Source: Paraphysomonas bandaiensis (taxonomy: Eukaryota > Protista > Chrysophyceae). Taken from it: a stretch of 64,000 bases of DNA. The DNA lies in assembly GCA_965644295.1 (NCBI GenBank), contig CBFFRP010000069.1, positions 248,001-312,000 on the forward strand, read 5' to 3'. Position 1 is the stretch's first letter; each line of letters starts with the position of its first letter. Made by a program: the position numbers and the translations under genes. Below, piece after piece: positions 30,375 through 37,602 of the stretch. The notes below the pieces were generated by a model. That model had not been told where the DNA came from. It made no database searches and was given only the letters and a program-made list of their open reading frames with translations.

Positions 30375-30597
30375 TATATACAACCATCCCCTTAAGATAT
30401 TCCTACATAAATTATGTCATATCCATATCTTTTTTTTTTAATTAGATCCACAAATTATTCACTTCATCACACTTTCTTCTTATATATATACCTATACACA
30501 CCGCACACAGAAGTATCTGATATGATCTTATAACAATCATCTTCATATGATCGAAGTGTATCATCATAATTATACTTTAAACATCTCTATATAATCA

Positions 30598-30621
30598 ATA
30601 CATACACATACACATACACAT

Positions 30622-30684
<63 letters not shown>

Positions 30685-30703
30685 TATACACATACACATA
30701 CAT
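30598..30703. repeat. (CATACA)-type microsatellite immediately 5' of the dehydratase ATG
   Basis: Tandem catacacata/catataca units ending ~5 nt before ATG 30708. Confidence 0.9.
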
Positions 30704-30707
30704 TAAA

Positions 30708-33300
30708 ATGTTTCTATCAATATCTTTTATTACTCTAATTTTCTATATATTTCAATATGTATCTGCTGATATATCATTTATTAAAAAGGTATGAACTATG
30801 AGTTATATATAGGATGATATCCCTTATAAAGCTATCTGTCTTCTTTTATACAGATTGTTGCAACTAATTTAGCTGATGGATACTGGGTAGAAGCTATGGA
30901 TGTAGATATGGATGGATGGATTGATTTGGTAACATCTGGTCTTGCTGTTGGTGATGTTTATTGGTATAGAAACCCTCATAATGAACATGATGAGTGGGTT
31001 CGACAACATATTATTAAGGTATACTATATATTTATGTATTGTATTTGTCTTATACACTTCTATGTACAGCTTAGCAAACCAGTTGCTATTGACCATGCAG
31101 ATATTGACAACGACGGTTTTCCGGATATCGTTATTTCGCATAATTACGGAAGTTGTATGTATAACTGTGCTCCAACTGACGGCAAGGTTTCTTGGCTTCG
31201 AAATCCTGGAAATTCTGAAAGAGGATGGGAGGCTAGGCTCATTGGAAACATTATGGCCGCCCATCGTGTAAAAATTGGAAAATTTACACAGAATACTAAC
31301 ATGGAGGTCATGGTTTTGCCTGTAGTGGGTGTGGAAGGTAGAATTATTGTTAATCGTCACTGTTTGTTGTTAATACGCTTGGATGTTTCCAGGAGTTCAT
31401 GAGCCTGTAAAAGTTCAAATATACAATTTACCCTCGCAAGAAGACATTCTGAAAAATGACCTCTGGACCATACAACCTGTCGACAACACTACATTTCGCA
31501 TTATTCACGGTGTAGTGGTTGGAAAGTTCGGGTCTCGCAGGGGGTCTGATTTGGATTCTGTGTTGCTGGCTAGCGAAGAAGGGGTGACTTGGTTGTATTA
31601 TGGAGGCAAGGAAATTGGATGGAAGCACGAGAACTTGAATAAAGGCGAGCTGTCGGAGTATTCGTTGACTAAATTCAAAGGCTCTGGTAATGTTGATGCT
31701 TGTCGAATTGGTGATGATGCCTTCGCCTTAATTCCCACGGCGGAACCATTTCACGGCAACACGATCGCTGCATACAGGAAGGACACGACAAATTCTTTGA
31801 CCGATGTACGGTGGGATAGACAGGTGTTGGAGGTGATGGGTCACCCGAATAGTGCGGGTGAGGGCGAGGCTCACCATGTGGTAAGCTCCCCATCCCTGTT
31901 ATTCATTATATCACACCACATTCGGATTAAGAATGACTAATATATGGGTTAGGTGTGTGCTGATTTTGATGATGATGGAAACGATGAATTTCTAGTTGCA
32001 CTGCGAGGCCCTATGCCCTACCAAGGGATTCTACACTTCACTCCTCTTCCGGTAGAAGAAGGAGTCCTGCCCAAATACAATTACCAGAAGCAATCCGTGT
32101 CAACGAATTCGGCCGCAAGAATTGCCCTTGCAGACTTCAACAACGATGGCAAGTTGGATTTTGCCACCACTGGATACTACACGCCAGGATACTTTTTGTG
32201 CGACAATCCTCAAGTCTTGGTGTACTACAACAACATTGAACAGCAAGGAAAGGGCTTGTCTGAAAGTTCTGTCCCTGCAGCCACTTCCACTTGCCTAGGC
32301 GAGGAAGCACTCCCCCCTGCTGAGAGAGTAGCGAAGAAGTCCGTATATTTTCCGGAAGGGGCTGTGAAGGTCGGCATTCAGCCCACAGGATGGGTTAATG
32401 ACGACTTTCCACTGCTGGGTAACGACCTCTATTCCTATGGGCAGATTATGGACGAGGTATATATCTCTTTCTTAGTGTTGCAATAACAGGATGTATGTTT
32501 TGTAGGTTGCTTTGGCGGGTTTTGAGGGCGGGTCTGTGGGACATAAGTACCCCACTGATCGTGCCGTTCTGAAGAAGGAGTTAGGTCTGCGAAACCTTGT
32601 CGTCTCTGAGCCTTGGACCAGCACTTATTTTTCTGTCCCCGGTATGGCCAACAAAACTACCGATGGGTTTGTCACATCGATGGATTTCATTCGAGATATG
32701 GGAGGAAAGTCCCTTGTAGTAGCTGAGTTGGGGCATGCCGTACACCAACTGCCCTTGCCCCTTTTTGCCAACAAGCCGAATTTCACGGAGGCGCAGTGGC
32801 AAGATGTGGCGGCAGGTTTGAACAGTCTTGGCCAACTGGCGAAGAACGCGGGTATGCAATTGCTCTATCATCACCATTTGGGGTCAGGTGTCATGTACAG
32901 AGATGAAATTGATAAATTGATGTCTCTTACCGATCCAGAGTTAGTGTACTTGCTTGTTGACACTGGACACGCTTTTGCAGCCAACGTTGATCCACTGGAT
33001 CTCATTCGCACATACAAGTCCAGAGTTCGCGAAGTTCACTTGAAGAACGTTCGATACCCCAGATTGCTCAAGGTTGTGCAGGACGGACTTACTTTCTACG
33101 AAGGCATTTTGGAAGGCATGTTCACCGTTCCTGGGGACGACAGCGGGGTGGTTGATTTCGAACCTATTCTTGGTGAGTTATCTGACTTGAAGTACTCTGG
33201 ATGGCTGGTCGTGGAAGCTGAGCAAGACCCAAGCAAAGGTGATCCTTTGCAATATGCCCAGACAGCGCGAGCGTACCTCAAACAGTTTGATGGACTGTAA
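30708..33300 (+). CDS. Signal-peptide protein: AUDH-type beta-propeller fused to an IolE-like (myo-inosose-2 dehydratase) TIM barrel, 766 aa
   Basis: Exons 30708-30788, 30854-31018, 31070-31337, 31393-31880, 31953-32456 and 32506-33300 (all GT-AG, 2301 nt in frame). Propeller motifs: LADGYWVEA, GKVSWLRNPG, AHRVKIGKFT, AEPFHGNTIAAY, HHVVCADFDDDGNDEFLVA, SAARIALADF, GYFLCDNP. IolE motifs: GWVNDDFP, YHHHLG, DTGH, VHLKN, FTVPGD, GWLVVEAEQDP. Confidence 0.88.
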
Positions 33301-33600
33301 GCTGCTCACCATTGCTTGGTCTCCGTTGTTGCAGCAAATTTTGAAAACGTTTATTAACTTGTTAACGATATGAGCAATTTATTTTATTGCATACTGGAAA
33401 AATATACACCAACAAATATCTATTCTGGTAATAAAGTGTGACGACTGGGTAGTACTAGAGACTGGGTTATCAAATTGACATAATATGATGAATGGCAAAT
33501 ACTTGATAAACTGAATGTAGCTCTCACTCAATGTTTTTTAAGAATTATAATCAATCTCACTTATCATTCATTGTCATTCGCTAAATTCATGCTACCTCAG

Positions 33601-35794: not shown

Positions 35795-37602
35795 CTACTG
35801 CAAAATACTATCACGGCACGCCTTGATTGCTAAAGCGGAGGCAGTCAGAGTCGGGTTGGCCGCCATTCCCTTATTGATATTACCATTCCCACCGACCCAC
35901 AAGTTAGTAGTACCCCAGACTTGGGAGTTGCAATCGGCCACACTGGTTTCCGGATCCTTCCCAACGCGAGTGACACCGTGGATGTGAAGCACCAACCCGG
36001 GAGCCATGAACTGCGGGTTCGAACCTGGCAAGAAACCACCAATGGATCTGGTGGCGCGGACCATGTCGAGCATCATATCGTGATGCTGTTGCGCATTAGC
36101 CACACTATCGCGAACATTAAAAGTTGGCTGTGGCATACCGAATATGTCCACTTCGGTGTCACTGAAAGTAACTTCGTTCGTTACCAACTGTTCGCCCAAG
36201 CCAAACCAGCGAAAATCAAGGACGAGTCGAGAGTCTACATTGGGGGCAGTGTCTCCGTAGGCGAACGCATCGCGATGGATCTGGCAGTGCCATGGTCTGC
36301 CTTCGCTAACAGGAATGTAGCAATTGGGATCGACGTCAGAGTACGGAATGGGGATGTCATTAGGAAAGTGCTCAAGATGGTCACGCACTGCCTCATGAAA
36401 TCGAGGATCCGTTCTCACTTTTTCGAGAATATTTTGGTTGTAAACCACTTGGCAGAAAGCCATGGGCTGTTCCACCAAATACTTGCCCAGGGCCGGCGAA
36501 CGAAAATTCGACTTGTGGAGGAGCTGTGCCCCCAACACTGTGCCGCCACACACAATATACTTCTTTGCTCGGACTATGGTTTGCGTCTTGTGGAGGAGGT
36601 TTTCGATGATGGCATATGACACGTTGCCATCTGCTCCCTTCACTAGCTCACGACAGATGTGTTGCTCCTTAATGACGAAGCGACGTCCTTCCATTCCTCG
36701 CGCCGGTGTGAAGTCTGCATCGTCGATAGAAAAGTTGTCATCCCTTCCCCACTCTCCCAAGACAGTGTTTGCAGAACCCCAGCGAAAAAAGGTCTTATTG
36801 TTTCCTCTCCTTTCCACTGACAGCGGCAAGTTCTGGGGATTGTATGGTGCTTGAAGCTCTGGGTACTCCTGTAAAGGAAAAATGTAAATATACATATTGC
36901 AAAAAATACTATAAAAAACACAAGAAAACAAGAAAATCTACAATTGCAAGTTTTATGTACCTGCTGTAGCGCCTCTCGAACCACTGTAGTTCGAATGGAT
37001 TGGTTGAAGGCAGCTTGGGTGCGACCGTAGAGGGCTTCAGCCTCATCATACAATTCATTCCATTCCGCCGGCTCTAAAATATCGGACTGCTCGATAGTAG
37101 GGTGGGCACGCGGAATCGCGCAGGTCCAATGAGTTGCCATGCCACCCACAGCGTAAGTTGCTGCCGCACCTGGCAAATTTACCGCTGGGTTTTGCTCATT
37201 ATTTTGGTGCAAAGCGCCAGGATAACCTGCAGGTGGTTTGTAGCTAAACGGATCCAATGTTGGAACAGTCGATGTATCCACCGGAACCGAAAGGGTGTGG
37301 AGATGACCCCTTATAACATTTGCAAAGGGGTTTACATCTTTTTGATAAACCGCTGCGTTCTTCAGATGCACCCCAGGTCGAATACTCTGAGCGCTTCCAA
37401 TGTCAACCATCAACACATTGTAATTATGTTTCTGATCATCTAATATCTTTCGAGCAAATGTTGCACCTACAGGTCCTGATCCCACGATCAAGACATCAAC
37501 ATCAATTTCTTGAATAATAGTAGGGGACACTTCTTTTGGGCAAGGATCATAATATCTACATTCATCATCATATGCTGATGATTCAGATTTCATTGATTTC
37601 AT
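35795..37602 (-). CDS. Pyranose 2-oxidase (GMC oxidoreductase, CAZy AA3_4-like), 571 aa
   Basis: Exons 37602-36961 and 36868-35795 (92-nt GT-AG intron). DVLIVGSGPVG FAD motif, GVHLKN, VGGMATHWTC flavinylation motif, PWHCQIHRDAFAYG substrate loop, SRLVLDFRWFG, FGMPQPTF, PGLVLH (catalytic His) and ANPTLT (catalytic Asn). Confidence 0.93.

Follow-up and report, generated by a model that had tools for sequence, protein, structure and literature searches.

Two described systems stand closest to the protein reported here. In wood-decay fungi the genes for pyranose 2-oxidase (P2O) and pyranosone dehydratase (AUDH) lie adjacent and are thought to yield cortalcerone (PMC4256170); AUDH itself, exemplified by the Phanerochaete chrysosporium structure (Protein Data Bank (PDB) 4A7K), joins a propeller of family PF22301 to a bicupin (PF18637) and a lectin domain. 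The second is the inosose dehydratase IolE (TIGR04379; PDB 3CNY), as encoded in the iol operon of B. cereus. More distant are the keto-glycoside lyases and hydratases (PDB 8TCD, 8TCS, 8RO4 '2-hydroxy-3-keto-glucal hydratase'), which belong to the same xylose-isomerase-like TIM-barrel superfamily and follow a like logic, in which a sugar is first oxidised by an oxidase or dehydrogenase and the resulting keto sugar is then taken on by a TIM-barrel enzyme. Here we describe a gene of the chrysophyte protist Paraphysomonas bandaiensis, located in a 64,000-nucleotide stretch of assembly GCA_965644295.1 (contig CBFFRP010000069.1, positions 248,001 to 312,000; hereafter the window), which encodes an AUDH-type propeller and an IolE-like barrel in one chain and, as in wood-decay fungi, has a pyranose oxidase gene beside it. 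We think it probable that the product is a bifunctional enzyme of bacterial ancestry and that, with the adjacent oxidase, it forms a eukaryotic version of a module that bacteria encode in three genes, those of a pyranose oxidase (POx), an IolE-like protein and an AUDH-like propeller.

The fusion gene was delineated by three-frame translation of positions 30700-33310 and is organized as follows (positions of the window; E1 to E6 are exons):

30708-33300, + strand, fusion gene of six exons; open reading frame (ORF) of 766 codons, stop codon 33298-33300
30708-30788, + strand, E1: start codon and hydrophobic N-terminus MFLSISFITLIFYIFQYVSA/D, from the translation
30854-31018, 31070-31337 and 31393-31880, + strand, E2, E3 and E4: propeller exons
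31953-32456, + strand, E5: end of the propeller, linker and start of the IolE part
32506-33300 (stop), + strand, E6: bulk of the TIM barrel
31019-31069, 31338-31392 and 31881-31952, + strand, introns of the propeller part, with borders equal to those of the spliced contigs
32457-32505, + strand, intron 5, within the IolE-like barrel
30854..32240, + strand, AUDH-type seven-bladed VCBS/FG-GAP beta-propeller, residues ~28-430, encoded by E2 to E4 and the first 96 codons of E5
32241..32354, + strand, interdomain linker of ~38-40 residues (IEQQGKGLSESSVPAATSTCLGEEALPPAERVAKKSVYFPEGA), low-complexity, inside E5
32355..33300, + strand, IolE-like xylose-isomerase-type TIM barrel, residues ~469-766

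The five introns read from the sequence are each of the GT..AG type and 49-72 nt long. To follow their removal we used Logan contigs from runs X1, X3 and X4 (seawater RNA-Seq) and from X5, a DNA-type run. In contigs from X1 and X3 every one of the five introns has been removed, exactly at the predicted borders, those of intron 1 included; one contig of 2658 nt spans 30712-33490 with an indel-free coding part, and X4 yielded a spliced contig that covers exons 1-4 only. These data confirm that one spliced mRNA encodes both domains in a single chain. Moreover, the end of the propeller (..GYFLCDNPQVLVYYNN), the linker (residues ~431-468) and the start of the IolE part (VKVGIQPTGWVNDDFP, at residue 472) are all carried by E5, so that the claim of the first-pass annotation that the fusion is real and not a gene-model artefact holds.

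Both domains and the neighbouring gene have their best matches in bacteria, a pattern that contaminating bacterial DNA, wrongly merged gene models or read-through of two genes would also produce. We nonetheless give an artefactual origin next to no weight. Five spliceosomal introns are spliced out in RNA contigs from three studies, one of which covers both domains; the domain junction falls within one exon; and an unspliced DNA form of the gene is present in the independent run X5. The genomic setting is likewise eukaryotic, a 62.6-Mb assembly of 669 contigs in which the gene, present as a single copy, lies among cyclin, leucine-rich repeat (LRR) and ankyrin genes and long terminal repeat (LTR) retroelements. 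Contamination and a merged gene model are ruled out by the spliced, gene-spanning RNA contigs.

The same contigs provided a measure of constraint. Contigs of X1, X3 and X5 differ from the window by ~1.3% substitutions, and RNA-type and DNA-type contigs of these runs share a 13-nt insertion, TGTTGCATCGTAG, at 33326 in the 3' untranslated region (UTR), which together suggests a second allele or strain. The transcribed copy carries 26 coding differences from the window. Since 20 of the 26 are synonymous, both halves of the protein are under purifying selection; the six non-synonymous differences are distributed as one in the signal region, two in the linker, three in the barrel and none in the propeller. 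Read by eye, the N-terminus is signal-like and would be a signal peptide or signal anchor. Upstream of the start codon we located the following feature:

30523..30707, + strand, 5' UTR, at the first position of which an RNA-type contig of X3 begins

It contains a long (ACATACAC)n-type microsatellite (~30591-30705) immediately before the start codon, and two short upstream ORFs lie near ~30522 and ~30547.

We searched the protein exon by exon, with exon-sized queries. The Pfam family PF22301 (AUDH_beta_propeller) matches E3 and E4 (E-values 5.6e-25 and 3.2e-15; 56.8 bits for E3 and 88.6 bits for E4, at a cut-off of 27), and FG-GAP repeats are found in E2, E3 and E5. AUDH structure 4A7K aligns over its residues 93-431, with E3 (93-176, 2e-17), E4 (189-339, 7e-13) and E5 (340-431, 6e-11), so that the matches span the entire propeller and end where the fungal enzyme passes into its cupins. 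Within this alignment His147, His210, His292 and His332 fall on His155, His215, His295 and His337 of 4A7K. Among 24 relatives from bacteria and fungi, 90% or more keep these four, and 69 of 75 conserved columns are retained in the window propeller. The earlier assignment of the propeller to the AUDH family is upheld, and the four histidines named there are kept. In AUDH the histidine cluster is reported to bind zinc (Claesson et al. 2012), and the aligned residues may act as metal ligands here.

A propeller of this kind need not be an enzyme. If the barrel alone were catalytic, the propeller could act as a non-catalytic carbohydrate-binding or oligomerisation module of the VCBS/PVL-lectin type that targets the protein to a glycan or surface. 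VCBS propellers do include lectins and scaffolds (PMC8023676), the signal-like N-terminus would fit such a role, and many bacterial homologues of the propeller have neither POx nor IolE nearby. We consider this improbable: the four AUDH histidines are kept here and throughout the bacterial clade, PF22301 is specific to the AUDH dehydratase propeller, and not one non-synonymous allele difference falls in this domain.

What follows the propeller differs from fungal AUDH, an IolE-like barrel standing where the fungal enzyme has its bicupin and lectin domains. No Pfam match to the bicupin PF18637 or to a lectin domain was found in any exon of the fusion gene, as the first-pass annotation had noted, and the cupin-bearing relatives P0029, P0018, P0100 and P0113 do match PF18637. 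When E5 was compared with 1.8 billion cluster representatives, multi-repeat FG-GAP proteins took up most of the matches listed and the single-stretch matches were usable; the nearest full-length relatives among the matches listed were stand-alone bacterial propellers of 410-490 residues (P0005, 65% identity over the E5 part). The same search also returned cupin-bearing AUDHs, one protein combining GMC, propeller and cupin domains, and propellers with an N-terminal extension. The best 120 matches of a profile search were all bacterial stand-alone propellers. The window propeller resembles such proteins (up to 58% identity, reached by P0400) more than it does the cupin-bearing AUDHs.

Both domain trees were made by a quick method. 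In the propeller tree the window sequence lies inside a clade of 28 bacterial propellers (98% support in the Shimodaira-Hasegawa-like approximate likelihood ratio test, SH-aLRT), most of them IolE-linked, and the cupin-bearing AUDHs fall outside this clade. The barrel groups, in the IolE tree, in a 97% clade with the POx-linked proteins of loci L005 (Nostoc) and L007, the propeller-linked protein of L001, and P0153. Bacterial nesting of both domains, each analysed by its own phylogeny, is solid; the placement next to an exact sister is less firm. The notion that the IolE barrel sits 'in place of' the fungal cupin and lectin domains consequently has to be given up, the propeller belonging to a bacterial clade of stand-alone, cupin-free proteins. 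We suggest instead that the IolE-like barrel would fill, in the bacterial scheme, the functional place that the cupin domain has in fungi, and that it is not an evolutionary replacement of that domain.

For the second domain, IolE structure 3CNY matches E6 at 1.6e-57, with residues 8-31 of IolE matching the last 24 residues of E5, and PF01261 also matches E6; keto-glycoside lyases and hydratases are reached only at E-values of 1e-7 to 1e-4. Against TIGR04379, the equivalog model of IolE, whose cut-off of 290 bits applies to the full length, E6 by itself reaches 270.9 bits; the match covers model positions 33-288, with positions 1-32 falling in E5. The barrel retains 89 of 96 conserved columns, and the metal motifs, which had been described as intact, are indeed present together with the catalytic ones: Glu576, HHH 624-626 (His624 and His626), Asp654/His657, His680 and Glu739/Glu741, among which Glu576, Asp654, His680 and Glu739 are shared with IolE. 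The sole non-conservative departure is H678E, which converts the consensus HVHLK to EVHLK (REVHLKN; window 32737-32739 region), two residues ahead of the metal-site His680 at a position that is histidine in at least 93% of IolE-like relatives. The closest matches of the barrel are bacterial 'inosose dehydratases' at 54-60% identity, and the IolE proteins encoded in iol operons reach only 34-45% (B. cereus 44.5%, Asticcacaulis 33.8%). The linker that joins the two domains is without counterpart in bacterial propellers in our alignment.

Downstream of the fusion gene, and convergent with it, lies the oxidase:

35795-37602, - strand, pyranose (2-)oxidase gene of bacterial type, two exons, ~2.5 kb downstream of the fusion gene

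NCBIfam model TIGR02462 (pyranose_ox) identifies the product. Its best solved relative is the cyanobacterial OPOx (PDB 9FL2; 3.8e-69 and 1.1e-40 for the two exons); fungal P2Ox structures match as well, C-glycoside 3-oxidases far more weakly. The best database matches are bacterial pyranose oxidases at 48-54% identity. The oxidase gene, like the fusion gene, is single-copy in the genome, and its translation has no N-terminal signal peptide.

We then found that the same three families, in forms that are the nearest relatives of the two window genes, occur together as separate bacterial genes. In these clusters POx, or a FAD-glucose-dehydrogenase-like (FAD-GDH-like) GMC protein, is accompanied by an 'IolE', a propeller and GH15, GDE or GH63, with alpha-glucan hydrolases usually among the neighbours, as exemplified by Rapidithrix thailandica, Streptomyces sp., Nocardiopsis terrae and Nostoc sp. 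CALU 546. Our linkage survey took in 23 species-representative genomes with a full-length propeller. At the six loci whose propellers matched the query of that survey best (46-51% identity to the propeller of the window) an IolE-like gene lies within 6 kb in every case, its product being 54-55% identical to the window barrel. At locus L001 the gene for propeller P0005 is followed after 47 nt by the IolE-like gene, which is the order of the domains in the fusion. POx, IolE-like and propeller genes follow one another in an unclassified metagenome-assembled genome (L014), Streptomyces sp. (L031) and Nocardiopsis terrae (L035); R. thailandica (L084) has POx, IolE-like, GDE, GH63-like and propeller genes, and the contig of P0400 (L085) has GH15, POx, IolE-like, SnoaL, aldose 1-epimerase and propeller genes. 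Five of the linked genomes each hold just one IolE-like gene, that of the cluster.

Linkage to an oxidase also extends to IolE-like genes retrieved through the barrel. At three Nostoc loci (L005, L007, L009) the IolE-like gene is immediately downstream of pyranose oxidase with GH15 nearby, and in Salipiger (L077, L078), Rhizobium (L080) and Sinorhizobium (L082) it lies behind a FAD-glucose-dehydrogenase-like GMC gene, a ferritin-like gene and a small protein, in clusters that also carry GDE, GH63 or GH15. The linkage spans Bacteroidota, Actinomycetota, Pseudomonadota and unclassified bacteria, and the clusters further hold SusC/D and, in some cases, a thiamine pyrophosphate (TPP) enzyme and sugar epimerases. 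The window repeats the composition of this module, with the fusion gene and POx 2.5 kb apart and each domain nested in a bacterial clade. It differs from the bacterial clusters, where the proteins are separate, in the fusion itself, the introns, the signal-like N-terminus, the convergent orientation of the oxidase and the absence of an adjacent glucan hydrolase gene. In the literature searched we found no paper on the bacterial POx/'IolE'/propeller cluster or linking pyranose oxidase with IolE-like genes.

These gene contexts bear on whether the barrel might be a true myo-inosose-2 dehydratase serving inositol or inosose catabolism, with the propeller acting on a second, unrelated class of substrate. 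The TIGR04379 score of E6 and the 43-45% identity of the barrel to IolE of iol operons would be consistent with this, yet the oxidase-linked relatives of the barrel pass the same model, at 341-362 bits. Because these relatives exceed the cut-off, TIGR04379 does not separate oxidase-linked from iol contexts, and the annotation of oxidase-linked proteins as 'myo-inosose-2 dehydratase' is likely to be systematically wrong. No inositol operon occurs among the contexts examined for the closest 'IolE' relatives, all of which are sugar-oxidase clusters, and those relatives (54-60% identity) adjoin sugar oxidases and glucan hydrolases outside iol operons. The protist genome, moreover, yields no match to IolB (PF04962) and no true IolD, the best IolD-like match scoring 183 bits against a cut-off of 715, and the gene beside the fusion encodes a pyranose oxidase and no iol protein. 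An inositol role for the fusion is unlikely because the genome is without IolB and true IolD, and we regard the division of labour between inososes and another substrate as very unlikely. The interpretation offered by the first-pass annotation is in consequence partly supported: its proposal of sequential steps on a keto sugar gains from the POx neighbour and from bacterial operons with the same three genes, whereas its alternative of two substrate classes, osones and inososes, is improbable given the oxidase-linked relatives and the missing IolB and IolD.

How the module might work can be outlined from the activities of its relatives. The oxidase would act on D-glucose or on a pyranose akin to it, for example 1,5-anhydroglucitol, and release H2O2 along with a 2-keto sugar, either glucosone or 1,5-anhydrofructose; the fused domains would carry out successive beta-elimination and rearrangement of that keto sugar. 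The IolE-like barrel may treat the pyranosone as IolE treats the structurally similar scyllo-inosose, and the propeller may act as the AUDH propeller does on aldos-2-uloses. The steps are predicted to end in a dehydrated diulose or in a pyrone of the cortalcerone/ascopyrone/microthecin type, serving either for breakdown or as a bioactive compound. As to origin, the protist most likely gained from bacteria a module made up of oxidase, propeller and IolE-like genes, after which the adjacent propeller and IolE-like genes fused; the former intergenic region and termini would have become the linker, and the five spliceosomal introns and the signal-like N-terminus would have been acquired later.

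Several observations weigh against this account. H678E might alter or lower the activity of the barrel. With a signal-like N-terminus on the fusion only, the oxidase and the fusion protein may reside in different compartments. Many bacterial propeller genes, those of loci L019-L030 (Streptomyces L022-L030 and the cyanobacterial L020, L021 and L024), show no POx and no IolE gene in the surrounding 10 kb; because these other clades are without both partners, the linkage is confined to one propeller clade. The trees are quick ones in which the window sequences sit on long branches (0.89 and 1.1). Finally, we infer the order of the steps and the location of the protein, and its substrates and products are read solely from homology and gene context.

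A different role for the same bifunctional enzyme would be chemical defence, in which it and the oxidase produce H2O2 and an antimicrobial pyrone of the cortalcerone or microthecin kind outside the cell. The fungal P2O and pyranosone dehydratase pair has been tied to the antibiotic cortalcerone (PMC4256170; also an entry in the reference list of PMC11650716, reference 13), and a signal-like N-terminus on the fusion is what export would call for. The oxidase, however, is without a signal peptide, and the bacterial clusters sit among glucan-degrading enzymes, with SusC/D and an aldose epimerase alongside and, at some loci, also sugar epimerases and a TPP enzyme, a pattern that looks catabolic. 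By analogy, the enzymes of the bacterial clusters suggest catabolism and the fungal cortalcerone route a bioactive product; on balance we hold defence to be rather unlikely, though the least so of the alternatives considered here.

We looked for the architecture elsewhere. With exon-sized queries and listings of the best 120-150 matches, no other propeller-IolE fusion was found in the representative search, in the profile search (where a weaker-scoring fusion could lie below rank 120) or in a metagenome scan with E5, and in the representative search with E5 no match listed reached into the IolE part. The short fragments P0004, P0006, P0012 and P0017, considered as exons of other fusions, match the propeller part only. 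The architecture, which could have proved to be common and already characterised, is a new one built from known domain families, and it exposes an uncharacterised bacterial module. More tentatively, the fusion may act as a 'Rosetta stone' that reveals a widespread sugar route not described before, in which POx or a related GMC dehydrogenase would make a 2-keto pyranose that a mis-annotated 'IolE' and an AUDH-like propeller then dehydrate and rearrange. The protist would have taken up the module by gene transfer and joined two of the enzymes in a single secreted protein. We give this broader proposal somewhat less than an even chance.

The searches with the propeller brought up further domain combinations. 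P0013 (1387 residues) carries GMC_oxred_C, the AUDH propeller and the AUDH cupin in one protein, which may be a true fusion of pyranose oxidase with AUDH or else the product of wrongly merged gene models; were it genuine, it would be a second 'Rosetta stone' tying an oxidase to the dehydratase. P0028 (L004 3417-5633) and P0092 are AUDH-like propellers with an N-terminal extension of ~300-390 residues, which in P0028 has a weak cupredoxin match. The L004 propeller gene adjoins a multicopper oxidase, GH31 and alpha-amylase, which suggests another glucan-linked setting. GH31 includes alpha-1,4-glucan lyases, which produce 1,5-anhydrofructose. Directly downstream of the stand-alone propeller P0007, of the cyanobacterial clade, lies an ORF of 242 residues (L006 1508-2233) with a faint AUDH_Cupin match (E 0.006), a candidate for a cupin partner that this clade would encode separately.

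These data bear on the fate of 2-keto-glucose after bacterial pyranose oxidase, an enzyme for which the title of one paper announces 'a step closer to elucidate a biological role' (PMC9916811). Gene fusion is strong independent evidence of joint function and here agrees with operon linkage across bacterial phyla, so that the combined data amount to a testable hypothesis for that fate. If the broader proposal is true, bacterial pyranose oxidases would gain a physiological role that we did not find stated in the literature searched, and the secreted bifunctional protein might yield a pyrone-type metabolite that is new. Probably many of the proteins that TIGR04379 labels 'myo-inosose-2 dehydratase' are not inositol enzymes. 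The fused enzyme could also serve as a single-chain catalyst for converting glucose to dehydrated keto sugars or pyrones. For the protist, the locus clearly illustrates how metabolic genes of bacterial origin can turn into a eukaryotic gene that is spliced, expressed and under constraint and whose architecture is new.

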